NCBI GenBank assembly: GCA_977020255.1
Contig: CDROCS010006097.1
Coordinates: 1 to 64,000, forward strand
Direction: 5' to 3'
Length of the DNA: 64,000 bases
DNA from: Obrimoposthia wandeli
Lineage: Eukaryota
Below the pieces are notes generated by a model. The model saw only the letters and a program-made list of their open reading frames with translations, was not told where the DNA came from and did not search any database. This document shows positions 24,976-35,756 of the stretch, in pieces; position 1 is the stretch's first letter; each line of letters starts with the position of its first letter. Both the position numbers and the translations under genes were made by a program.

Positions 24976-25380
24976 ATGGATGAGCAAGTTAAAACTAAAA
25001 TAGAGACCTATCCTTTAAATGTAAGGCCGATGTTCCTTAGTATTCGCCAGTTGATCTATCAGATTGCTGAGGATGAGTCACTCGGTGAGGTGGTTGAATC
25101 GTTAAAATGGGGCGAGCCTAGCTATCAGTCTAAAAGTGGCAGCGCGGTTAGGATCGATTGGAAAAAATCGTCGCCATCATGTCTTTCACTGTATTTTCAT
25201 TGCCAAACTTCTTTGGTCGACACGTTTAAGCAAATATACCCAGATACGTTCCATTTTATAGGCAACAGAGAAATCGCTCTAGCTTGCGCGCAAGAGGTTC
25301 CCGTAGTGCAATTACAAGTGTGTCTTTCAATGGCGCTGCGCTATCACAAGATTAAGCATTTATCGCTCCTAGGTTCATAG
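24976..25380 (+). CDS. DUF1801 domain protein
   Basis: ESLKWGEPSY..K.GS.VRIDWK..P..LYFHCQT.LVDTF..GNRE pattern. Confidence 0.8.
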   Translation: MDEQVKTKIETYPLNVRPMFLSIRQLIYQIAEDESLGEVVESLKWGEPSYQSKSGSAVRIDWKKSSPSCLSLYFHCQTSLVDTFKQIYPDTFHFIGNREIALACAQEVPVVQLQVCLSMALRYHKIKHLSLLGS

Positions 25381-25436: not shown

Positions 25437-25910
25437 ATGAAATTACCTATTACGATTGGCGCAAGGACTACGACTGATCATGTCAGGATATTACTCAGCT
25501 CATATCGTGAATGTTTTAAGCAACCGTTAATTACTGGATATGATGAGCTAGAAGAGGCTTTTGAAATGCTCTGGCAAGCGGATTTTGTCTTGTTATCTCA
25601 CGGCACCGAAGAAGACCCGCTGTTTAATTTTGGCAACCAACAAGCACTCGCACGTTTCGAGATAGAATATAAAAATTTGGTCGAATTACCTTCCAGAAAG
25701 TCAGCGGGAATCAGTACACAGCAAGAACGTAATAAGCTGTTGGAAACGGTGACAAACCAGGGGTATATTGATAATTATTGTGGTATTCGAACCTCGACAT
25801 CGGGTAAGCAGTTTTATATCGAAAACGCCAAAGTTTGGAATTTAACCGATGAAGAGGGGGGGTATTGCGGCCAAGCCGCTATGTTCGATAAATGGACAGA
25901 TATAAGCTAA
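25437..25910 (+). CDS. Stand-alone MEKHLA (PAS-like) domain protein
   Basis: LLSHGTEEDPLFNFGNQQAL..FE...LPSR.SA..ER..G..DNY.GIR.S..GKQF.I...VWNL.D..G..GQAA.F. Confidence 0.85.
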   Translation: MKLPITIGARTTTDHVRILLSSYRECFKQPLITGYDELEEAFEMLWQADFVLLSHGTEEDPLFNFGNQQALARFEIEYKNLVELPSRKSAGISTQQERNKLLETVTNQGYIDNYCGIRTSTSGKQFYIENAKVWNLTDEEGGYCGQAAMFDKWTDIS

Positions 25911-26183: not shown

Positions 26184-27044
26184 TTATTCAATTTGCTTGT
26201 TTTTATTAAAGCGAAACTTGTGCCCAGGATATGTGCCGATTACTCGCATTTCACTGGAAAAATAGGCTAATTCTTGCAGTGCAAATTGCATTCGCTGTTC
26301 GTCCGGATGACCCTCTACATCCGCGTGAAAACTAGATACTGTCATGGTATCTGACGCCATATAACTCTCTAGCTTCACCATGTTAATACCGTTAGTCGCA
26401 AATCCTCCCATTGCTTTAAACAGCGCAGAGGGGATATTACGGACGGTGAACATGATAGTGGTGATAAACGTGGTATTGGTTTGAAATGTGGGTATCTGCT
26501 GCTCTTTCGCCAAAATGATAAAACGAGTTGTATTACCATCTCTATCTTGGAAGTTTTCTTTAATAATATCTAACTGATAGAGTTCAGCAGCGAGTTCAGA
26601 TGCAATGGCAGCGTGATTAGGCTGTTTGGTGAGTGCTAGCTCTTCTGCTGAGCCGGCGGTATCTAAATGAGCTATTTGGCTCAAACCTAGGGCTTGGATA
26701 GATTTATTACACTGGGCTAGGGCTTGAGGATGAGAAGAGACCGTTGCCAACTGATCTATGTGCGTGCCTGGTAGTGCTAAGAGACAGTGATTTACCGGTT
26801 CGAAGTGCTCACTAATAATATGCAGTTGAGTTTGCGGCATGAGACGATAAATTTCTTCCACACGTCCAGCCGTGGAGTTTTCCAATGGAATCATTGCCAG
26901 TAGTGCATCGCCACGTTCAACCATATACATTGCTTGAGCAAAGCTCGAACAAGGGTGGGCTTTCATTTTAGGGAATACTTTTTTGCAAGATAGATGGGAG
27001 TAAGCGCCAGCATATCCCTGATAGGCAATTGTATTGGTACTCAT
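26184..27044 (-). CDS. pheA: Monofunctional prephenate dehydratase
   Basis: AYQG..GAYSH, PLENSTAGRV, SHPQALAQC, NTTRF, ACT domain with KLESY; no chorismate mutase domain. Confidence 0.92.
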   Translation of the reverse strand: MSTNTIAYQGYAGAYSHLSCKKVFPKMKAHPCSSFAQAMYMVERGDALLAMIPLENSTAGRVEEIYRLMPQTQLHIISEHFEPVNHCLLALPGTHIDQLATVSSHPQALAQCNKSIQALGLSQIAHLDTAGSAEELALTKQPNHAAIASELAAELYQLDIIKENFQDRDGNTTRFIILAKEQQIPTFQTNTTFITTIMFTVRNIPSALFKAMGGFATNGINMVKLESYMASDTMTVSSFHADVEGHPDEQRMQFALQELAYFSSEMRVIGTYPGHKFRFNKNKQIE

Positions 27045-27156
27045 TGTGACAGCTAACCCCTAAAACGTAGTAAGGAAAAGCAGCATTTGGCTGCGCTGAG
27101 AAAATACTCTTTTTTATCACTAAGCGCCAGAAAAATTCGTCACTAAGATGACTGCA

Positions 27157-28350
27157 CTATGTATTAGCTGTCTTAGTACGAGTGGTGTAGATAAAATAAA
27201 CGGGGGTTAGTACAGCAGCGATGATATAGCTGTGGTTTAGCACGGTATATACATTACTGTCCCAGTATGTCCAAGCGAGTAAACCGAAAAATGCAATTAA
27301 AGCACTTTGCGAGTAATAGCTTTTCATTAGAATATAGGGCGCATCGGGGTAATGCAGTGCTAAATCGTAAAAACGTTTATTGAACGCCAGACGAAACAGA
27401 GCAGTGAGGAAGGCAATTGTACATAAATAAAGGAACTGGCTAACCAAACTTAAATTATCATCTAAGTTTGCACGCAGTAACCAAGAAGCTAGATAACCGA
27501 CTACAGATACGGTGTAAACCAGCTGCTCAGGCATTCGGTCAATATACTTTTTCAAAACAAAGAACACCACAGATAATGCGATGGTGATAGCAATAATCAT
27601 AAAACCAAGCTGCATGAAGCTCTGCTTTAGAATAAGAAAAAGCGATAATAGCCAAAAATAACTCTCAAGAAAGAGAAAGAAGCCATCTAGCGCAAATACT
27701 TCTCGCGAACGATACTTGTCCTTAAAACGAATCACTTGATTAATAGGTACGGTTGCCCATCGTCTAAAAGGCCAATCAAGGGGCCCTTTGAGTTGGATGA
27801 CCAGCGCAAAACTAACGATACTGAGAAGGGCCGAAATGGCGAGTAACCATCCCATGTGGTCTTTATCTAGCAGGGCGCCACCCAGAAAAACCCCCAGCTT
27901 TAAGAATGCGACCACAAACACTTGAAAGTTACCGTATCGATCCCCGGTATTGTGGCTGCTACTGCGTTGAATGAAAAGTGCGCGTTGAGTGGTCCAGAAA
28001 AAACACTGGTATAACCCGTAACTGGCAGCAATTAAATAAACATAGTGATGCGTTTCAGCAATATGCGGTGCGCACAACACTAATGTTGTAATCATGGTGA
28101 GCTCTAATAAGTAGCATAGCCCAAGTAAGCTGCGTGGGCTCAACAGTGCTTTTACTCTGTCCCACAGCCACATGCCTAAGGTGAACGTGACGGCACTAGC
28201 GGCGATAAACAAACAAATCTCGCCTAAACTCAATCCTTGTTTATAGAGGAAAACGGGGAGAAAAAAAGGAAAGAGACCAATCAAAAAAGAGTGGCTGCAA
28301 ACAAAAAGATAAAATTGCTTTTGTTGCAGCGCTGCTTGGTTAGCTGTCAT
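27157..28350 (-). CDS. MFS-type transporter
   Basis: 397 aa, about 12 hydrophobic segments; start overlaps the upstream stop (TAATG). Confidence 0.75.
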   Translation of the reverse strand: MTANQAALQQKQFYLFVCSHSFLIGLFPFFLPVFLYKQGLSLGEICLFIAASAVTFTLGMWLWDRVKALLSPRSLLGLCYLLELTMITTLVLCAPHIAETHHYVYLIAASYGLYQCFFWTTQRALFIQRSSSHNTGDRYGNFQVFVVAFLKLGVFLGGALLDKDHMGWLLAISALLSIVSFALVIQLKGPLDWPFRRWATVPINQVIRFKDKYRSREVFALDGFFLFLESYFWLLSLFLILKQSFMQLGFMIIAITIALSVVFFVLKKYIDRMPEQLVYTVSVVGYLASWLLRANLDDNLSLVSQFLYLCTIAFLTALFRLAFNKRFYDLALHYPDAPYILMKSYYSQSALIAFFGLLAWTYWDSNVYTVLNHSYIIAAVLTPVYFIYTTRTKTANT

Positions 28351-29261
28351 TAATAGGTATCAGTTTGGCTGATATTTAAGGCATCAAGTTTAGCGTAATA
28401 CGGGCTTAAATCTTCACGTTGGCCTTGACGGGGTACGTCGTGCATCTTCAAATAAGGACGGGAATTTACTTCCAGTAGAATACATTTCTGTTGATCGAAA
28501 GGAACATCAATTCCTTTTTCCATAATGACATCTATGCCTAAAATGTTGGCGTTAAACGCTTTCAATACTTTGAGCAGCATTGTCTTATTGACGTCTGGAA
28601 TGGTATTTTTATCTAAAGTGTGGATCGTTCCACCCGGCGCAAGTGCAATGCGATAAAATAAGGTAACGGTTTCATTGAGAGCGGGCACAGAGTCAAAACT
28701 TAAGCCCTGTTTAGCCAAATACTTTGTTGTTAGATCTGTTTCTTTGATCGGATAGATAGTTGGAAAGAGCCCCATTTCTTGACGAGTATTATTCTCAGCT
28801 GCAGCCAAAGTGCGAATATTATCCTCACCATTTCCAGTCACCGTGGGCGGGAAGCGTTCAATGGCCGACATGATTTCACCATCAATGACAACGACGCGGT
28901 AATTATGGCCCTGTAAGTATTGTTCTATTACAGTGGTTGGCCACCAAATTTTGGCGAGTAGCAACGCTTTATAGAGTTCTTTGTAATTGCGAATAGGAAA
29001 ATAACTACCGCGCGAAAATCCGCTGACATTAGGTTTAATAACAAGTGGAAAGCCATGCTCTTTGACGAAATTATGAGCGGCTAGCGGGCCAAAAATTATC
29101 TTTCCTTTAGCATGCGGAATATCGTTAGCGGCAAAAGTGTCACGGGCTTGTTTTTTGGAACGACAGCCGCGGCGTACATCTAACGAATTGTAACTACTAC
29201 AGTCAGACATGAACTTTTGACTAACCCAAGCATAAATTTTACGTTTAATTGCGAACATCAC
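28350..29261 (-). CDS. Stand-alone CphA/GshF-type ATP-grasp ligase
   Basis: GFPLVIKP, IEQYLQG.NYRVVVIDG, R.PPTVTGNG, GGT, GIDVI, LEVNSRP; lid insertion typical of cyanophycin/glutathione synthetase ATP-grasp domains; no Mur-ligase or GshA domain. Confidence 0.8.
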   Translation of the reverse strand: MMFAIKRKIYAWVSQKFMSDCSSYNSLDVRRGCRSKKQARDTFAANDIPHAKGKIIFGPLAAHNFVKEHGFPLVIKPNVSGFSRGSYFPIRNYKELYKALLLAKIWWPTTVIEQYLQGHNYRVVVIDGEIMSAIERFPPTVTGNGEDNIRTLAAAENNTRQEMGLFPTIYPIKETDLTTKYLAKQGLSFDSVPALNETVTLFYRIALAPGGTIHTLDKNTIPDVNKTMLLKVLKAFNANILGIDVIMEKGIDVPFDQQKCILLEVNSRPYLKMHDVPRQGQREDLSPYYAKLDALNISQTDTY

Positions 29262-29265
29262 TAAC

Positions 29266-30111
29266 TCACTTAGTTCTAGGTTGGAATAAGGTTTTTTTGA
29301 TAAAAACTTTTTTACTTTCTTGATGTTTCGGGATCACTCCTACCAAGCTGACAAGGTGGTACATACTGGAAAGGATAAAGCGAAATTTTTCTTTGAATTC
29401 AACTGTTTTATCCATCAAGTTTATCGGCATTGGCAGGTAAAGGTTAATCTCAATGACTTTAAAATTACCTTGCTGTAGCGCTTCGAGCGACTCTGCACGC
29501 ACCCCAACGCGGGCAAAGTTATAATTCCCGATACAAGCGACACTTTTCCAAATATCGTTGAGCTGGTTTGGGTTTAGTTTGGCGGTCATAGAAGTATAAA
29601 AGGTGTGTTCGTTCTTAACACTGTTGACCGGTAAATCCATGCCACTGGTATTGGATGTTTCCGTTACGGTTAAGCAGGTGTAGCTCGAAAGCTCGCGATG
29701 ATCCCGAATATAAAAAATTTCAAACTCACGCTTCTCTTGAGCCGCTTCCTGAATCAAGTAGACCATTTTGCTATTCATGCAGTGGTTGCGTATATAGGCA
29801 AGTTCAGTGGCGTTGTCAGCGCGGCGTACGCCTTGACCATTTTGGCCCCACTCTGGTTTTACAAATACAGGAAAGCGTTCAGGGACCAGTAAACCATCAT
29901 CTATCGATTGCTTCAGGCGCCAGCTTGGCGGGATGTTCTGATCGATATCATTTTTAGAATAGATCCCTAGTGCTTCATTGAAATGCGCTGCGTTAATTTG
30001 AAAATAACGCCAAGGTGCTTTTAGGCGTCTTATACAGGTCAAAATGAAGGTGATAACTAATAAAAATCTAATCAGCATATAAAGTCCTTTAACATTCAAT
30101 TGATTGCTCAA
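29266..30111 (-). CDS. Divergent ATP-grasp (carboxylate-amine ligase-like) protein
   Basis: FPVFVKPEWGQNGQGV, YLIQE..EFEIFY, FKVIEIN; hydrophobic N-terminus; 4 nt from the next gene. Confidence 0.65.
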   Translation of the reverse strand: MSNQLNVKGLYMLIRFLLVITFILTCIRRLKAPWRYFQINAAHFNEALGIYSKNDIDQNIPPSWRLKQSIDDGLLVPERFPVFVKPEWGQNGQGVRRADNATELAYIRNHCMNSKMVYLIQEAAQEKREFEIFYIRDHRELSSYTCLTVTETSNTSGMDLPVNSVKNEHTFYTSMTAKLNPNQLNDIWKSVACIGNYNFARVGVRAESLEALQQGNFKVIEINLYLPMPINLMDKTVEFKEKFRFILSSMYHLVSLVGVIPKHQESKKVFIKKTLFQPRTK

Positions 30112-30394
30112 TTGAATACTGGCTCAGCTGCGGATAAAACGATATTAGCCGTCAGCTTAAAAATAGTTAATTTTATTTAATTCATCATAAATAAAACCGT
30201 TGTAACTATAAGTATTTACGCCCAGTAAGCGTCTATAGATTCAAAATAAGGGGATAAAAACTAAGGTTATTCTAGATAAAGTAAAGATTAGCTCACTTTG
30301 AGGACAACACTCATTTTAAACCCGGTACTTCAGCTATATCCGCAAATAGCGAATAAGCTGAGTGGGGTGATTTTAATCACTTATGCGAGGATGA

Positions 30395-32545
30395 TCAACC
30401 ACGCTTGAAGCTGTGGTATTTTTCTACCCATCTAAGTAGCTTTTCAGGCGAGTGTGCCTTCTTCCAATTACCTGCAGCGTACTTGTTAGCTTCGGCCATG
30501 GTGGGGTAAGTGTGAATAGTGCCAAGAATTTTATTCAAGCCTAAGTTGTACTTCATTGCTAAGACGAATTCAGTTAAAAGCTCACCTGCGTGTAATCCTA
30601 CAATGGTTGCTCCCAGAATTTTATCTTTACCTGGCACGGTGAGTACTTTAACGAACCCTTGTGTCGCGCTTTCAGCGATAGCGCGATCAAGATCGTCCAA
30701 CGGGTAGCGAGTTACTTCATAGGGAATACTTTGTTCAATGGCTTCCTGCTCGTTCAGGCCGACTCGAGCAATTTCAGGATCAGTAAAGGTTGTCCAAGGA
30801 ATAACTGAATAATCGACTTTAAAGCGTTTAAAATCACCAAATAGTGCATTCACACTGGCATACCAAGCTTGATGTGCCGCTGTATGGGTGAACTGGAAGG
30901 GACCAGCGACATCACCCGCAGCGTAGATGTTTGGATAGATGGTTTGCAAGTACTCATTAGTAATAACAGTGCGTTCAGTATCTACACCTAAAGTTTCTAA
31001 ACCATACCCACTCAAACGGGCAACACGGCCGACTGCGCAAATAAGTTCATCATACTCAATCGCCACTTCTTTACCATCGTGCTCGGCGATAAGAAACTTC
31101 TTAGAATCTCGTTTTTCACAGCGCAATGCTTTATGTGCGGTGAGTACATTAACGCCACTTTGAGTTAATGCCGTTGTCGTTACTTCAGAGACCTCTTCAT
31201 CTTCACGAATCATGATACGCTCAAGCATTTCAACTTGAGAAACGTGGGCGCCTAATCGAGCAAAGCTCTGGGCCAACTCGCAGCCTATTGGCCCTCCGCC
31301 AAGTAACACTATTTTTTGTGGTATTTCTTCACGCTTTGCCATCTCGTGCCACAGCGTATCACTGGTCAAATAGCCTGTTTCTTCTATGCCCGGAATAGGG
31401 GGGATAAAAGGTTGGGCACCGGCGGCGATGATTATTGATTGCGCAGTTAACGTTTTTATCTCGCCTTGATTAGTGGTGATTTGCACTGTCCAAGGGTCAA
31501 TGATTTTGGCATAGCCGGGTACAACATCTACACCGAGATTCGTGTAGCGCTCAACACTGTCGTGAGGCTCTATCTGACGAATAACATCATCGATACGTGC
31601 CATCACCTTTTTAAAGCTAAATTTAACTTCGCCAGGTGTTAGGCCATAGTGATCAGCGTGGCGAATTTGATCGGCAATTTTGGCGCTTTTAATCAGCGCC
31701 TTGCTGGGAACGCAACCATAGTTAAGACAGTCACCGCCCATTTTATGTGCTTCAACTAATGTGATTTTCGCTTTAACAGCGGCGCCTATATAAGCGCTAA
31801 CCAGACCTGCTGCACCACCACCAATAACAATGATGTTGCGGTCAAAAGATTTAGGTTTCGTCCATTTGGCATAGACTTTACGTTTTTGCACTTGAGCGAC
31901 AATCTTTTTACCGATAAGCGGAAAGACGCCTAAAAGTATGAAAGAGAACAGTAAACCAGGGGAAAGAATACCTGAGAGGCTGTCTATTTGGATGAGCTGT
32001 GTACCGGCGTTAACAAAAACAATGGTTCCGGCTAACATTCCCAACTGACTTACCCAATAAAAAGTAACAGTGCGAATGGGGGTTAGCCCCATTAACAAGT
32101 TGATCATGAAAAAAGGAAATAGTGGTACGAGGCGCAAGGTAAATAAGTAAAAAGCACCTTCGCGAGCAATACCTTGGTTGATTGCCTGTAATTTATTGCC
32201 AAAGCGCGCTTGAGCGCTCTCACGAAGTAAAAAGCGGGTGACTAAAAACGCCAGTGTCGCGCCGATACTTGAGGCAAATGATACTAGCAGGGTTCCCCAA
32301 AAGAGACCGAAAAAAGCGCCTGCGGCCAATGTTAATACGACCGCTCCAGGTAGTGACAGAGCAGTCACTAATATGTAAATAAAGAAAAAACCCCCAGCCA
32401 GCAGAATAGGTTGCTCTGTTTGTAGTTGCGAAAAATGCTGTTGGCTCTGTTTGATCCCCTCTAAAGTGAGATATTGATCTAAGCCAAGCTGATAAAACAT
32501 GACAGCCGCAATGATGACTGCAGCAATGATTGAGAGCTTTTTCAT
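30395..32545 (-). CDS. DedA/VTT membrane domain fused to a class-I pyridine nucleotide-disulfide oxidoreductase
   Basis: N-terminal SLPGA..LRLVPLFPF (VTT); GGGAAG, GGDCLNYGCVPSK, GGGPIG, HTYPTMAE. Confidence 0.9.
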   Translation of the reverse strand: MKKLSIIAAVIIAAVMFYQLGLDQYLTLEGIKQSQQHFSQLQTEQPILLAGGFFFIYILVTALSLPGAVVLTLAAGAFFGLFWGTLLVSFASSIGATLAFLVTRFLLRESAQARFGNKLQAINQGIAREGAFYLFTLRLVPLFPFFMINLLMGLTPIRTVTFYWVSQLGMLAGTIVFVNAGTQLIQIDSLSGILSPGLLFSFILLGVFPLIGKKIVAQVQKRKVYAKWTKPKSFDRNIIVIGGGAAGLVSAYIGAAVKAKITLVEAHKMGGDCLNYGCVPSKALIKSAKIADQIRHADHYGLTPGEVKFSFKKVMARIDDVIRQIEPHDSVERYTNLGVDVVPGYAKIIDPWTVQITTNQGEIKTLTAQSIIIAAGAQPFIPPIPGIEETGYLTSDTLWHEMAKREEIPQKIVLLGGGPIGCELAQSFARLGAHVSQVEMLERIMIREDEEVSEVTTTALTQSGVNVLTAHKALRCEKRDSKKFLIAEHDGKEVAIEYDELICAVGRVARLSGYGLETLGVDTERTVITNEYLQTIYPNIYAAGDVAGPFQFTHTAAHQAWYASVNALFGDFKRFKVDYSVIPWTTFTDPEIARVGLNEQEAIEQSIPYEVTRYPLDDLDRAIAESATQGFVKVLTVPGKDKILGATIVGLHAGELLTEFVLAMKYNLGLNKILGTIHTYPTMAEANKYAAGNWKKAHSPEKLLRWVEKYHSFKRG

Positions 32546-32606
32546 TGTGATCCACATGATTGTTGAGAAATGAAAGACTACCTAGGGGCTAAGTAGTCTT
32601 GAAGTG

Positions 32607-33095
32607 TTAAATATGCTTTTTGTTCAGTACAGCGAGGATAAGGCCTAAGACAAAAATAGAAACGGCTGCAGCGAAAAGAGAACCGCCATCGCTTTTTCCT
32701 TCGTGTAATACTTGAACCCCAAGAGGCGTGAATAAATGGAAGAACGCAGCACCAGCCATAATAGCCGAAGAGACTAGGCCGCCAAGCGTAAAGAAAATTG
32801 CAGGATTTGGTGTGCGTTTTAAAATGCCGGTAGCACTGAGTACAACGCTAAGTAAGGCGGTGATCAAAATAGCGGAGGCTATTATTTCTGCACTGCCAAC
32901 AACGACTGCACCGTATTGAGTGAATAGCTCGCCCAAGCCAGTTGAAATAGTCTCTGACATCCACTGACCAATAGTGCTAAAAATATGTTGAGTATCCGGG
33001 TGGTTACTAAATTTATAAGGGATTGAACTGAGGAAAACCTTACTGATCCACAGGGTAATGATAACGCTTATAATACGGGTAATCTTTAACGACAT
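32607..33095 (-). CDS. DoxX-like membrane protein
   Basis: 4 TM segments; FLSSIPYKF, GSAEI, GAAFFHLFTPLG pattern. Confidence 0.6.
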   Translation of the reverse strand: MSLKITRIISVIITLWISKVFLSSIPYKFSNHPDTQHIFSTIGQWMSETISTGLGELFTQYGAVVVGSAEIIASAILITALLSVVLSATGILKRTPNPAIFFTLGGLVSSAIMAGAAFFHLFTPLGVQVLHEGKSDGGSLFAAAVSIFVLGLILAVLNKKHI

Positions 33096-33291: not shown

Positions 33292-33783
33292 TTAAGGGAC
33301 CTTGTAGTAGTTGAGTGGTACGGCAGTGCTGTCGACAATTTTTCGCATAATGAAGGCAGACTTAACCCCGCTGACCCCTTTTATGCAGGTTATTTTTCCC
33401 AGTAATATATCGTGATACCTATCCATATCCGGTACGGCTACTTTGAGTTGGTAGTCGGCGTCGTGTCCTGTAATGAGATAGCATTCCATGACTTCCGGAA
33501 AAGTTTGAATAACACGTTCGAACTCAGCAAACCGCTCTGGTATATGTTTGTCCATGCTGATGTGTAATATGGCATACAGCGTTAACCCCAGTGCGCGTCC
33601 ATCTACCCGCACGACTCTGTCTTTAATAACCCCTAAGTCTTCTAAGTTTTTAATGCGTCGTGAACAAGGCGCGGCGGTAAGTCCAACGCGTTCTGCAAGT
33701 GCTTGATTGGACAAGCCCCCGTCGTTTTGTAATTCACGCAATATCTTTAGATCAAAACGGTCAATGTTGAGATTTTTTTCCAT
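33292..33783 (-). CDS. Lrp/AsnC family regulator
   Basis: IDRFDLKILRELQNDGGLSNQALAERVGLTAAPCSRRIK; EVMECYLITG..DY; divergent from leuA. Confidence 0.92.
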   Translation of the reverse strand: MEKNLNIDRFDLKILRELQNDGGLSNQALAERVGLTAAPCSRRIKNLEDLGVIKDRVVRVDGRALGLTLYAILHISMDKHIPERFAEFERVIQTFPEVMECYLITGHDADYQLKVAVPDMDRYHDILLGKITCIKGVSGVKSAFIMRKIVDSTAVPLNYYKVP

Positions 33784-34094
33784 AACTAAGGCTACTTCCG
33801 CAATAATAAATAAGCTTAAGGGCAATGTACTTTACTAAATTTGCGCAGAAATGCAAAATAAACAATAAATCGCTGGGATATTGCGCGGTATATTTTTTAT
33901 AATAGAGTTACTCGAGATTACTCCTCTCAAGTACGGTACCAAGGTGTGATACTATCCGATTCACACCAAAACTAGGGCTACCCGCCTCATGTTTGTAAAG
34001 GTACTTGTCTATCAGACAAAGACGCAGTTAAGGTGCACTAAGTCATGTACCAACTGCGTTATTCACTTTCACTTCTAATCCTTTAGGCAGCAAT

Positions 34095-35756
34095 ATGTTT
34101 GATCATCGTAAATATAAAGTGTTTGAAACCGTTAAATTAAAAGATCGTACTTGGCCAGATAAGCAACTAACAAAAGCGCCGGATTGGTGCAGTGTTGATT
34201 TGCGTGACGGTAACCAAGCGCTGGTCAATCCGATGAATGTCGAACAAAAAACAAAAATGTTTAAATTGCTGCTCAAACTTGGATTTAAGGAAATAGAAGT
34301 AGGTTTTCCATCGGCGTCTAAACCTGACTTTGATTTCGTACGTAAATTGATTGAAGAAGATTTAATCCCTGCAGATGTTACTATCCAAGTATTAACTCAA
34401 GCACGTGAAGATTTAATATCCAGAAGCTATGAAAGCCTTGTGGGCGTTAAACAAGCCGTTGTACATGTTTATAACTCCACCTCTGTCGTGCAACGTGAGC
34501 AAGTGTTCGAGAAAGATAAGGATCAAATCAAAGCGATTGCTGTGCAAGGAGCAAAATGGGTCAAAGAATATGCGGCTAAATACCCACAAACGCAGTGGCA
34601 CTTTCAATATTCTCCCGAGAGTTTTACGGGAACTGAAACCGATTATGCTATTGAAGTATGCGATGCCGTTATAGAACAGTGGGCACCGCAACATGGTCAG
34701 CCAGTCATTATTAATTTACCGTCCACGGTTGAGATGAGCAGCCCTAATGTGTTTGCTGATCAAATAGAGTATTTCTGTCGTCACTTAGCTAAGCGCGAGT
34801 TAATACGTATTTCTTTACATACACACAACGATCGCGGGTGTGCTGTTGCCGCCGCTGAGCTGGGTGTCATGGCAGGAGCTGATCGGATAGAGGGCACGTT
34901 GATGGGTAACGGTGAACGTACCGGTAACATGGATATTGTCACAATGGCAATGAACTTGTACTCCCAAGGTATCGACCCTGAATTAGATTTATCCAATATT
35001 ATCGACATCATCGAGACAGTCGAATATTGTAATGAATTACCCGTACCAGCGCGGCACCCTTGGGCTGGTGAATTGGTGTATACCGCTTTTTCTGGTAGTC
35101 ATCAGGATGCTATTCGAAAATCCGTTAATTATCATGACCGTCATAACTTAACGCAATGGGATGTTGCCTATTTACCTATTGATCCTCGTGATATTGGTCG
35201 CGAATACGAAGCGGTTATTCGGATTAACAGCCAAAGCGGCAAAGGAGGAGTTGCACTCGTACTCGAGCGCGATTTTGCAATAGAATTACCGAAATGGATG
35301 CACGCGCCAGTTAGCCAATTAGTGCAAAAAGAGGCAGAAGAGCAGGCGGTTGAAGTATCAGCACAGAATATCAAAGCGATATTCGATAATAACTTTGTCA
35401 CTACCGATAATCATTGGGCGCTACAGCAATACGATATACATACCCAAGATCATCAAATACGTGCGCAGTTCACTATCGGTAATCGCCAATATAGCGGTAA
35501 CGGTGCCGGCGCGCTCGAAGCGTTGTGTGATGCATTAGGTACACAGTATCAGTGTGAAATAGAAGTGCTTAATTACGATCAGCGTGCGATAGACCAAGGT
35601 ACTAACGCTCAAGCACGAGCATGTATTCAAGTAAAAGTGGGGAGTGAAATTATTTGTGCAACAGCACAAGATGAAGATACAACTCATGCAACTTTACAGG
35701 CTCTACTAACGGCAATTAGTCGCTGTAGCGCAGTGACAATCCAAAGCGTTGCTTAG
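34095..35756 (+). CDS. leuA: 2-isopropylmalate synthase
   Basis: CSVDLRDGNQAL, EIEVGFP, SLHTHNDRG, GNGERTGN, FSGSHQDAI, IRINSQSGKGG; C-terminal regulatory domain. Confidence 0.95.
   Translation: MFDHRKYKVFETVKLKDRTWPDKQLTKAPDWCSVDLRDGNQALVNPMNVEQKTKMFKLLLKLGFKEIEVGFPSASKPDFDFVRKLIEEDLIPADVTIQVLTQAREDLISRSYESLVGVKQAVVHVYNSTSVVQREQVFEKDKDQIKAIAVQGAKWVKEYAAKYPQTQWHFQYSPESFTGTETDYAIEVCDAVIEQWAPQHGQPVIINLPSTVEMSSPNVFADQIEYFCRHLAKRELIRISLHTHNDRGCAVAAAELGVMAGADRIEGTLMGNGERTGNMDIVTMAMNLYSQGIDPELDLSNIIDIIETVEYCNELPVPARHPWAGELVYTAFSGSHQDAIRKSVNYHDRHNLTQWDVAYLPIDPRDIGREYEAVIRINSQSGKGGVALVLERDFAIELPKWMHAPVSQLVQKEAEEQAVEVSAQNIKAIFDNNFVTTDNHWALQQYDIHTQDHQIRAQFTIGNRQYSGNGAGALEALCDALGTQYQCEIEVLNYDQRAIDQGTNAQARACIQVKVGSEIICATAQDEDTTHATLQALLTAISRCSAVTIQSVA

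Follow-up and report, generated by a model that had tools for sequence, protein, structure and literature searches.

Two ATP-dependent amide-forming enzymes of the predicted ATP-grasp type and a membrane transporter are encoded by a real, uncharacterized gene module, which is shared by hundreds of marine and animal-symbiont bacteria and which, in a tentative reading, builds a small sulfur-containing amide and moves it across the inner membrane. The module was examined in a window of 64,000 nucleotides (contig CDROCS010006097.1, positions 1 to 64,000), where two intact ATP-grasp genes, here named G1 and G2, and a divergent gene of the major facilitator superfamily (MFS) lie tightly packed on the minus strand and a genuine pheA starts 112 nt further on. 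The arrangement described in the first-pass annotation, i.e., a 4-nt gap, a TAATG overlap and a prephenate dehydratase gene 112 bp downstream, was thus confirmed. Its interpretation as an undescribed peptide or amide operon of two ligases and a transporter, possibly with pheA as a phenylalanine-supply gene, was supported only in part; the trio is a co-conserved, uncharacterized unit, G2 is a stand-alone ATP-grasp protein of the CphA/GshF/Ngg type without partner domains, and no cyanophycinase, GshA or Mur domain is found nearby, but a membership of pheA is not supported. The annotation also missed a fourth core gene, a set of accessory genes, hypotaurine-synthesis genes embedded in the clusters of other lineages, and the kinship of G1 with ligases of aminolipid operons.

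The longest open reading frame of G1 spans positions 29266-30111, but the real start is the ATG at 30078 (gene 29266-30078, minus strand), which is preceded by a conserved AAGGA ribosome-binding site and yields a protein of 270 aa, matching the 270-aa homologues. The sequence evidence for an ATP-grasp protein is weak (Pfam CPSase_L_D2 E 0.0016, below cut-off), but the predicted fold is clear, i.e., the AlphaFold model has a pLDDT of 91.6 and a Foldseek search yielded more than 450 PDB matches at E ≤ 0.001, led by D-Ala-D-Ala ligases (Ddl) at E 1e-8 and a TM-score of about 0.5. The residues K74 (in VKPEWGQN), R190, E210 and N212 (in IEINL), i.e., the ATP-binding Lys and the Mg-binding Glu-x-Asn motif among them, are invariant in 27 sequences, and the profile aligns the Lys region with VanA and Ddl. 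The protein has no N-terminal pre-ATP-grasp (substrate) domain; only about 55 residues precede the central domain, and residues 1-19 form a hydrophobic helix with a mean hydropathy of 1.91.

G2 (28350-29261, minus strand) probably starts at the ATG at 29258, which gives 302 aa as in its homologues. It matches only the G-domain part of cyanophycin synthetase (TIGR02068, E 1e-42, positions 212-462 of 862, 145.9 bits against a cut-off of 850), the C-terminal ATP-grasp part of the bifunctional glutathione synthetase GshF (NF002688, E 1e-24, 86.5 bits against 425), and positions 323-528 of the N-acetylglutaminylglutamine synthetase Ngg (TIGR03103, 85.7 bits against 569). Because these scores are far below the family cut-offs and the full architectures (N-G-M, GshA plus ATP-grasp, and GNAT plus ATP-grasp, respectively) are absent, G2 does not belong to any of these three families. 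Profile searches of the PDB gave hits to CphA1 and CphA2, and the fold search agreed (CphA1, E 1e-18, TM-score 0.71; GshF-type entry 3ln6, E 2e-17), although the G2 model is of only moderate confidence (pLDDT 74.5). Residues K76, E113, D244, E264 and N266 are invariant.

The MFS gene (27157-28350, minus strand; 397 aa) passes the Pfam MFS_1 gathering score only just (34.7 against 33.4 bits). The protein has about 10 hydrophobic segments and an Atlas feature score of 0.99 to MFS clusters, which places it in the superfamily, but no PDB sequence relative was found and no subfamily could be assigned. The G1 stop codon, TGA, is separated by 4 nt from the GTG or by 7 nt from the ATG of G2, and G2 and the MFS gene are translationally coupled by the TAATG stop/start overlap. 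The unit is preceded by an AT-rich leader and promoter region of 316 nt (30079-30394, minus strand) with a promoter-like site at 30398-30370; this region has no Rfam match and, apart from the ribosome-binding site, is poorly conserved among relatives. The likely 3' boundary is a terminator-like hairpin at 27080-27094 (minus strand), GCAGC-loop-GCTGC followed by a T-run, which is a consensus match only. Beyond it, pheA (26184-27044, minus strand) is a standard prephenate dehydratase that passes the NCBIfam equivalog NF008866 (399 against 359 bits).

The packing of these genes is not chance. The same order recurs in 80 of 80 related genome loci that were fetched, where G1 occurs in 79, the MFS gene in 72, and a further gene, TM4, in 60. 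TM4, which is found in the window at 32607-33095 (minus strand), encodes a four-helix, DoxX-like membrane protein of 162 aa and is the fourth core gene of the module. It is located directly upstream of G1 in most of the 60 loci that carry it, stays in the cluster where the gene order is rearranged, and in 7 of 7 genomes checked is single copy and always found beside G1/G2. Its Atlas feature score is 0.91 to clusters named "DoxX family", but the window protein has no hit to Pfam DoxX or DoxX_2 and only 2 of 22 family members reach DoxX_2 (best E 4e-4), i.e., the DoxX assignment is a lead and not a family match; invariant His, Asp and Glu residues are present. Pairwise-identity matrices of G1, G2, MFS and TM4 correlate (Spearman 0.56-0.81). 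Recurrent accessory genes in other loci encode a secreted YHS protein (54 of 80 loci), DinB (36) and TANGO2 (19), and these genes also remain together in rearranged orders. The YHS proteins carry a signal peptide and one invariant Cys at the position that is Sec in seleno-forms (PMC13188914). None of the three is found on the contig of the window.

In the window, TM4 and G1 are separated by an inserted gene (30395-32557, minus strand; 720 aa) encoding a VTT/DedA domain fused to a pyridine-nucleotide-disulfide oxidoreductase (Pfam VTT_dom plus Pyr_redox_2 and Pyr_redox_dim). It was found at this place only in the 8 closest loci and is a possible accessory gene, although its VTT part is not closely related to the stand-alone VTT genes of other clusters. 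In SUP05-type loci, such a stand-alone VTT/DedA gene replaces the MFS gene, i.e., the two alternate as the last gene. The pheA gene is adjacent only in 8 of 80 loci, all from the closest clade (within that clade, two loci have about 5 kb of other genes in between), and it is absent from the neighborhood everywhere else; it is therefore a neighbor and not a supply gene.

A possible link to substrate is provided by clusters from at least three distant lineages, in which an Arg-type cysteine dioxygenase (CDO) and a CSAD-like decarboxylase, which together make hypotaurine, are encoded directly upstream of G1. A group-II PLP decarboxylase and a cupin sit between TM4 and G1 in a SUP05/Thioglobus genome, a Sedimenticola MAG and a Desulforhopalus genome. 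The best solved relatives of the decarboxylase are cysteine sulfinic acid decarboxylases (E 2e-66). The cupin aligns with mammalian and Bacillus cysteine dioxygenase; a profile of three cluster cupins aligns with rat CDO (4pix, E 1.5e-8) and keeps the 3-His iron site (H-x-H and H), the Y-x-R carboxylate clamp and the H-x-Y motif, while Gln-type thiol dioxygenases score much worse. A metagenome scan seeded with the cupin returned 12 loci, of which 9 have G1, or G1 and G2, immediately downstream. However, only about 12 of roughly 110 cluster loci seen carry the pair, the clade of the window lacks it, and three related genomes have no such CDO anywhere, which means that the amine used here could differ.

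G1 is also homologous to an ATP-grasp family encoded in ornithine-lipid (OlsF and OlsBA) operons (hhalign probability 93.5%, E 2.4e-7, and HMM hits). Members of this uncharacterized sister family are mostly fused to a VTT/DedA domain, and sometimes also to an alpha/beta-hydrolase, and are found beside OlsF, or beside OlsB-like plus OlsA-like genes, with the same accessory genes, i.e., YHS, DinB, TANGO2, DedA and a TM4-like gene. That system pairs the ligase with aminolipid acyltransferases and has no G2 or MFS, and its ligase is fused to DedA, whereas G1 carries only a single N-terminal helix.

The reading that we favor, although only tentatively, is that G1, G2, the MFS protein and TM4 form a conserved membrane-associated amide-ligase module that makes a hypotaurine- or taurine-capped amide and moves it across the inner membrane. 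In this model, each ATP-grasp enzyme would activate a carboxylate as an acyl-phosphate and join it to an amine. G2, which resembles enzymes that extend the C-terminal carboxylate of an N-blocked amino acid or peptide, would make the first amide from amino acids, while G1, held at the membrane by its N-terminal helix, would cap a carboxylate with an amino-sulfinate or amino-sulfonate, namely hypotaurine or taurine. The anionic product would then be moved across the membrane by the MFS protein or, in other lineages, by a DedA/VTT protein. Outside, the secreted YHS Cys/Sec protein and the DoxX-like protein would use it in a redox or sulfur-handling role where they are present, and DinB and TANGO2, a putative Cys-Ntn amidohydrolase, would modify or recycle it. 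Because no cluster-linked hypotaurine genes are found in this genome, the amine would come from the host or the environment. The gene content, the folds (as predicted by models), the conserved catalytic motifs, the co-conservation and the embedded CDO/CSAD genes of other lineages are results of the analysis, while the substrates, the order of the steps, the direction of transport and the physiological role are inferred, and no product, substrate or expression has been shown. Furthermore, both ligases lack the N-terminal domain that usually helps bind the acceptor, i.e., the analogy with CphA or GshF is loose.

The main rival, less likely but not remote, is a remodeling of lipid head groups, in which the ligases would act on a carboxylate-bearing membrane lipid, such as an aminolipid, phosphatidylserine or an N-acyl amino acid, and extend its head group with amino acid and/or taurine-type residues on the inner leaflet, after which the MFS or DedA protein would flip the modified lipid. 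The link of the sister family to aminolipid synthases favors a lipid substrate, as do the membrane helix of G1 and the fact that three of the four core proteins are membrane-bound, and ATP-dependent taurine transfer to ornithine lipid (cerilipin) is known biochemically although its gene is unknown (PMC12971839). On the other hand, no acyltransferase was found in any of the roughly 110 loci of the G1-G2 type, an OlsF homologue was found in only 1 of 7 genomes that carry the cluster, the characterized relatives of G2 all use soluble substrates, and the lipid acceptor would have to be guessed.

The remaining alternatives appear unlikely. A glutathione-like or other redox peptide of proteinogenic amino acids, for example a gamma-Glu or Cys peptide exported as a periplasmic redox buffer, would fit the match of G2 to the ATP-grasp half of GshF, the name "glutamate--cysteine ligase" given to some homologues in databases, and the redox-flavored neighbors (DinB, the YHS Cys/Sec protein, the DoxX-like protein and the disulfide-reductase fusion). 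However, there is no GshA-type domain, the database names are automatic labels, and the only recurrent substrate-supply genes are CDO plus CSAD, which remove the thiol and the carboxylate of cysteine. Even less likely is a cyanophycin-like polyamide, where G2 would elongate a poly-aspartate-type backbone and G1 would replace the Mur-like M domain in decorating the side chains; although CphA1 and CphA2 are the closest solved and annotated relatives of G2 and two ligase activities match the G-plus-M logic of CphA1, G2 has no N domain to hold the polymer, no M domain and no cyanophycinase, and the obligatory pairing with an MFS or DedA transporter and small membrane proteins does not fit a cytoplasmic storage granule. 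A phenylalanine-containing product with pheA co-transcribed as a precursor-supply gene is very unlikely; the same-strand position of pheA and its adjacency in the closest relatives are outweighed by the restriction of this adjacency to one clade, the equivalog-level identity of the enzyme and the hairpin in the gap.

A more far-reaching possibility, considered unlikely on present evidence but not excluded, is that G1-type ATP-grasp enzymes are the missing ATP-dependent taurine/hypotaurine ligases of bacteria. In OlsF/OlsBA operons these would make taurine-capped ornithine lipids of the cerilipin type, a step for which the gene has been unknown since the 1970s, and in the G1-G2 module of the window they would make a previously unseen hypotaurine- or taurine-containing peptide. 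Marine symbionts of Osedax, Bathymodiolus and corals would then export this peptide as a periplasmic antioxidant or sulfane-sulfur carrier, serviced by a Cys/Sec YHS protein and a DoxX-like, quinone-linked partner.

The module is widespread; a scan of one genome per species returned 335 matches and a protein search returned more than 1,100 protein clusters, yet it is annotated only as "cyanophycin synthetase", "glutamate--cysteine ligase" or "hypothetical", i.e., at the least these misleading annotations can be corrected. It is concentrated in ecologically important marine bacteria such as Osedax bone-worm symbionts, Bathymodiolus and SUP05 sulfur oxidizers, Endozoicomonas, and Psychromonas and Colwellia. 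Culturable carriers include Neptunomonas japonica, Amphritea balenae, Psychromonas arctica and Colwellia psychrerythraea ND2E. In vent and seep animals, hypotaurine and thiotaurine are considered major osmolytes and sulfide buffers. The link to hypotaurine synthesis offers a concrete substrate hypothesis for an orphan pathway, and the kinship of G1 with the ligases of ornithine-lipid operons offers a candidate for the unidentified taurine-transfer enzyme of aminolipid biology.

Compared to the G domain of cyanophycin synthetase, G2 shares the ATP-grasp core in sequence and fold, with the Lys, Glu and Glu-x-Asn catalytic motifs, and probably the same chemistry, i.e., acyl-phosphate activation of a C-terminal carboxylate followed by amide formation, but it is composed of 302 aa against about 870 and is always paired with a second minimal ATP-grasp protein and with membrane proteins. 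The ATP-grasp halves of GshF and Ngg, each of which adds an amino acid to the carboxylate of an N-acylated residue, are the second-closest relatives, but the GshA and GNAT partner domains are absent and the scores are 5 to 7 times below the family cut-offs. The cluster variants that carry CDO/CSAD follow the logic of the animal carnosine pathway, where an acidic-amino-acid decarboxylase (GADL1/CSAD) supplies an unusual amino compound that the ATP-grasp carnosine synthase joins into an antioxidant amide; however, the ligases are unrelated in detail, a cysteine dioxygenase precedes the decarboxylase in the bacterial variants, which points to hypotaurine and not beta-alanine, and the window has neither gene. 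In MprF-type synthase and flippase pairs a cytoplasmic head-group-modifying enzyme is likewise coupled to a membrane translocator, but MprF uses aminoacyl-tRNA and not ATP-grasp chemistry, and the proteins are not homologous. A graspetide or microviridin system, in which a precursor-peptide gene lies next to RimK-type ATP-grasp ligases, was not found, since in most loci the gaps between TM4, G1, G2 and the MFS gene are too short for a gene, and PsnB-type ligases rank far below CphA in the fold search.

All four ORFs that the first-pass annotation reported at 26184-30111 are present on the minus strand, i.e., the underlying observation is correct. The longest ORF of the first ligase gene, G1, spans 29266-30111, but all 270-aa homologues and a conserved AAGGA ribosome-binding site place the start at the ATG at 30078. 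By sequence, G1 is only a borderline ATP-grasp protein. However, an AlphaFold model built on 27 homologues is confident (pLDDT 91.6), and its best structural matches are D-Ala-D-Ala ligases at E 1e-8. The Lys of the VKPEWGQN motif, R190 and the E-I-N of IEINL are invariant. The protein lacks the usual N-terminal domain and begins instead with a hydrophobic helix, which has a mean hydropathy of 1.91 over residues 1-19. The second ligase gene, G2 (28350-29261), probably starts at the ATG at 29258, and its product matches only the G-domain core of cyanophycin synthetase and the ATP-grasp halves of GshF and Ngg, in all cases far below the family cut-offs. A profile search of the PDB and a fold search, the latter with a model of moderate confidence, agree with this assignment. 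A profile comparison of G1 with G2 revealed no specific relationship beyond the Lys motif. The third gene encodes a divergent MFS protein for which no NCBIfam or PDB relative was found that would define a subfamily, and pheA encodes a bona fide prephenate dehydratase. The junctions are as described in the first-pass annotation, i.e., 4 nt between G1 and G2 (or 7 nt to the ATG), a TAATG overlap between G2 and the MFS gene, and 112 nt before pheA.

A scan of one genome per species identified 335 places that encode a G2 relative, of which the best 80, at 57-79% identity, were retrieved. In this set, G1 is found in 79 of 80 loci, directly upstream of G2, and the MFS gene in 72, directly downstream of G2. 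In contrast, pheA is found in only 8 loci, all of them in the closest clade (Nitrincolaceae and Osedax-symbiont relatives), and in two of these it is located about 5 kb away. In the window, a terminator-like hairpin lies between the MFS gene and pheA, and a 316-nt AT-rich gap precedes G1. A search of this leader returned no riboswitch or other known RNA, and it is poorly conserved. Given its restricted distribution and the hairpin, pheA is a neighbour and not a member of the unit. The interpretation offered in the first-pass annotation, an undescribed peptide or amide operon of two ligases and a transporter that possibly included pheA as a Phe supply gene, is thus partly supported: the ligases and the transporter are co-conserved, while the inclusion of pheA is rejected.

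An all-against-all comparison of the flanking regions uncovered recurrent families that had been overlooked in the first-pass annotation. These are a four-helix membrane protein of 150-170 aa, here referred to as TM4, in 60 of the 80 loci, a YHS-domain "(seleno)protein" (NF041384) in 54, a DinB-family protein in 36 and a TANGO2/NRDE protein in 19. The usual order is YHS-TM4-G1-G2-MFS-DinB-TANGO2, and some lineages rearrange this order but keep the genes together. In the window, TM4 is located at 32607-33095. In this clade a gene at 30395-32557 (minus strand), which encodes a 720-aa fusion of a VTT/DedA membrane domain to a MerA/Lpd-like flavoprotein disulfide reductase, has been inserted between TM4 and G1. 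Because TM4 is single copy and is found next to the ligases in all seven genomes checked, we count it as a fourth core gene. It has invariant His, Asp and Glu residues and resembles DoxX proteins by language-model features, but it does not reach a Pfam match. The YHS proteins have signal peptides and a single invariant Cys in PQYGGYCAW, which is the site that is selenocysteine in seleno-forms (PMC13188914). YHS, DinB and TANGO2 are absent from the window's contig, and three genomes related to the window have YHS paralogues but no DinB of this type.

In SUP05-type and other small genomes the last gene of the cluster is a stand-alone VTT/DedA gene rather than the MFS gene, although one such genome has the MFS gene. 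Orthology of the window's VTT-flavoprotein fusion with these stand-alone VTT genes was not supported. In SUP05-type symbionts, the cluster is preceded by a conserved block (L107:2378-5499 and L112:1820-4597, two of the related loci) encoding a TPMT methyltransferase, an SLT transglycosylase, a small Rieske protein and a TrpD/YbiB-like glycosyltransferase-3 protein, the last of which lies directly upstream of TM4. Overall, the module is rare and patchy: it was found in 3 of 201 sampled Gammaproteobacteria and it also occurs in Desulfobacterota.

A clue to the substrate is provided by three distant lineages, a SUP05/Thioglobus genome (locus L104), a Sedimenticola MAG (L073) and a Desulforhopalus genome (L110), which carry the same two-gene insertion in front of G1, i.e., a group-II PLP decarboxylase followed by a small cupin. 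The three pairs are orthologous. The best solved relatives of the decarboxylase are cysteine sulfinic acid decarboxylases at E 2e-66, followed by GADL1 and GAD65/67. The cupin profile aligns with mammalian and Bacillus cysteine dioxygenase (CDO) and retains the Tyr-x-Arg clamp, the three iron-binding His residues and the His-x-Tyr motif, while Gln-type thiol dioxygenases score much worse. Cysteine dioxygenase followed by this decarboxylase is the established route from cysteine to hypotaurine. A metagenome scan seeded with the cupin returned 12 loci, of which 9 have G1, and G2 where the contig allows, immediately downstream, in the order (YHS)-TM4-decarboxylase-CDO-G1-G2-(MFS or VTT). The remaining three loci show the pair, or the cupin alone, without the ligases. 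At one locus without the ligases (L119:388-6027), the pair of a CSAD-like decarboxylase and an Arg-type CDO is found next to a 1,238-aa DUF3683-FAD-FeS oxidoreductase, which looks like a free-standing bacterial hypotaurine pathway. Hypotaurine has an amine but no carboxylate, such that in an ATP-grasp reaction it can only be the nucleophile, giving an amide that ends in a sulfinate. The clue stems from a minority of loci, none of them in the window's clade, which has no such CDO; if the same amine is used here, it must be imported. In the literature searched, no paper was found that links hypotaurine with a bacterial ATP-grasp enzyme or that describes this gene set.

A sister system was found on another contig (C666) of the same assembly, at L105:5101-9233 and L106:270-2169, where an operon encodes a VTT/DedA protein, a 401-aa ATP-grasp protein, DinB, TANGO2, YHS and an OlsF-type ornithine-lipid synthase. 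This ATP-grasp protein is homologous to G1 (hhalign probability 93.5%, E 2.4e-7), but not to G2. A search of 1.8 billion representatives yielded 973 relatives of it at E < 1e-30, most of which have 530-590 aa. All six of the longer members (549-935 aa) that gave a Pfam hit carry a VTT/DedA domain N-terminal to the ATP-grasp part, and two of these also carry an alpha/beta-hydrolase. The ligase family is usually fused to VTT/DedA. A comparison of TM4 with the sister ATP-grasp showed no similarity, i.e., TM4 does not appear to be a detached N-terminal domain of that protein. Three further loci of this family each display part of the same gene set: the order is hydrolase / VTT-ligase / OlsF / YHS in L126, OlsB-like / OlsA-like / DinB / TANGO2 / hydrolase-VTT-ligase / YHS in L128, and YHS / TM4 homologue / unknown / ligase in L129; a fourth locus was on a contig too short to show any of these genes. 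A G1-like ligase together with YHS, TM4, DinB, TANGO2 and DedA thus forms a recurring set, which pairs either with aminolipid synthases or with G2 plus the MFS protein. According to a 2026 review, taurine transfer to ornithine lipid is ATP-dependent and its gene is unknown (PMC12971839). The ligase of the OlsF operon is a candidate for this taurine transferase.

From these data we conclude, with high confidence, that the locus is a conserved, membrane-associated two-ligase module of four core genes from which pheA is excluded. The mechanism that we favor is more tentative. In this view, G2 would make a first amide from amino acids and G1, at the membrane, would cap a carboxylate with hypotaurine or taurine, after which the MFS protein, or DedA elsewhere, would move the anionic product across the inner membrane. 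There, the secreted Cys/Sec YHS protein and the DoxX-like protein would act on it or with it, while DinB and TANGO2, the human homologue of which was recently proposed to be a Cys-Ntn hydrolase (PMC13044924), would modify or recycle it. The gene content and its conservation are established by the analysis, but the substrates, the product and its transport, as well as transcription of the genes, remain inferences; among the sequencing runs, of which only contigs were compared, a single run, guessed to be RNA, covers 28796-30197 across the G1/G2 junction, which is too weak to count.

The main alternative, which we regard as rather unlikely but not far behind, is that the carboxylate belongs to a membrane lipid and that the transporter is a flippase. 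This model is supported by the sister family and its DedA fusions, but no acyltransferase was seen in about 110 loci of the G1-G2 type and an OlsF homologue was found in only one of seven carrier genomes. A glutathione-like peptide, a cyanophycin-like polymer, a graspetide RiPP and a Phe-containing product are less likely. The presence of DinB also prompted a comparison with thiohistidine-dipeptide clusters (NHISS plus ATP-grasp, PMC13674229), but this identity was rejected because no sulfoxide synthase is present and because the DinB found here is a stand-alone 180-aa protein.

The 1.35-Gb assembly that holds the window (G000) comprises 6,912 contigs and is a mixture of organisms, such that hits to its "own genome" come from other organisms. 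At least five copies of the cluster are found on different contigs, including C2877, C506, C2866 and C2315, all outside the window. The C2315 copy has 3 in-frame TGA codons in TM4 and 4 in G1, which suggests either a pseudogene or a TGA-recoding lineage; a homologue labelled Candidatus Gracilibacteria also appeared among the search results. Within the window, a stand-alone MEKHLA-domain protein (Pfam E 3e-52) and a DUF1801 protein are encoded at 25437-25910 (plus strand) and 24976-25380 (plus strand), just downstream of pheA on the other strand. Judging from ORF clusters, similar small proteins appear to lie next to pheA also in the closest relatives, although a direct tblastn search found no match. 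On the other side, just upstream of TM4 (33292-35756), a gene for an Lrp-family regulator on the minus strand lies divergent from a 2-isopropylmalate synthase gene, leuA, on the plus strand, both of which are ordinary housekeeping genes.
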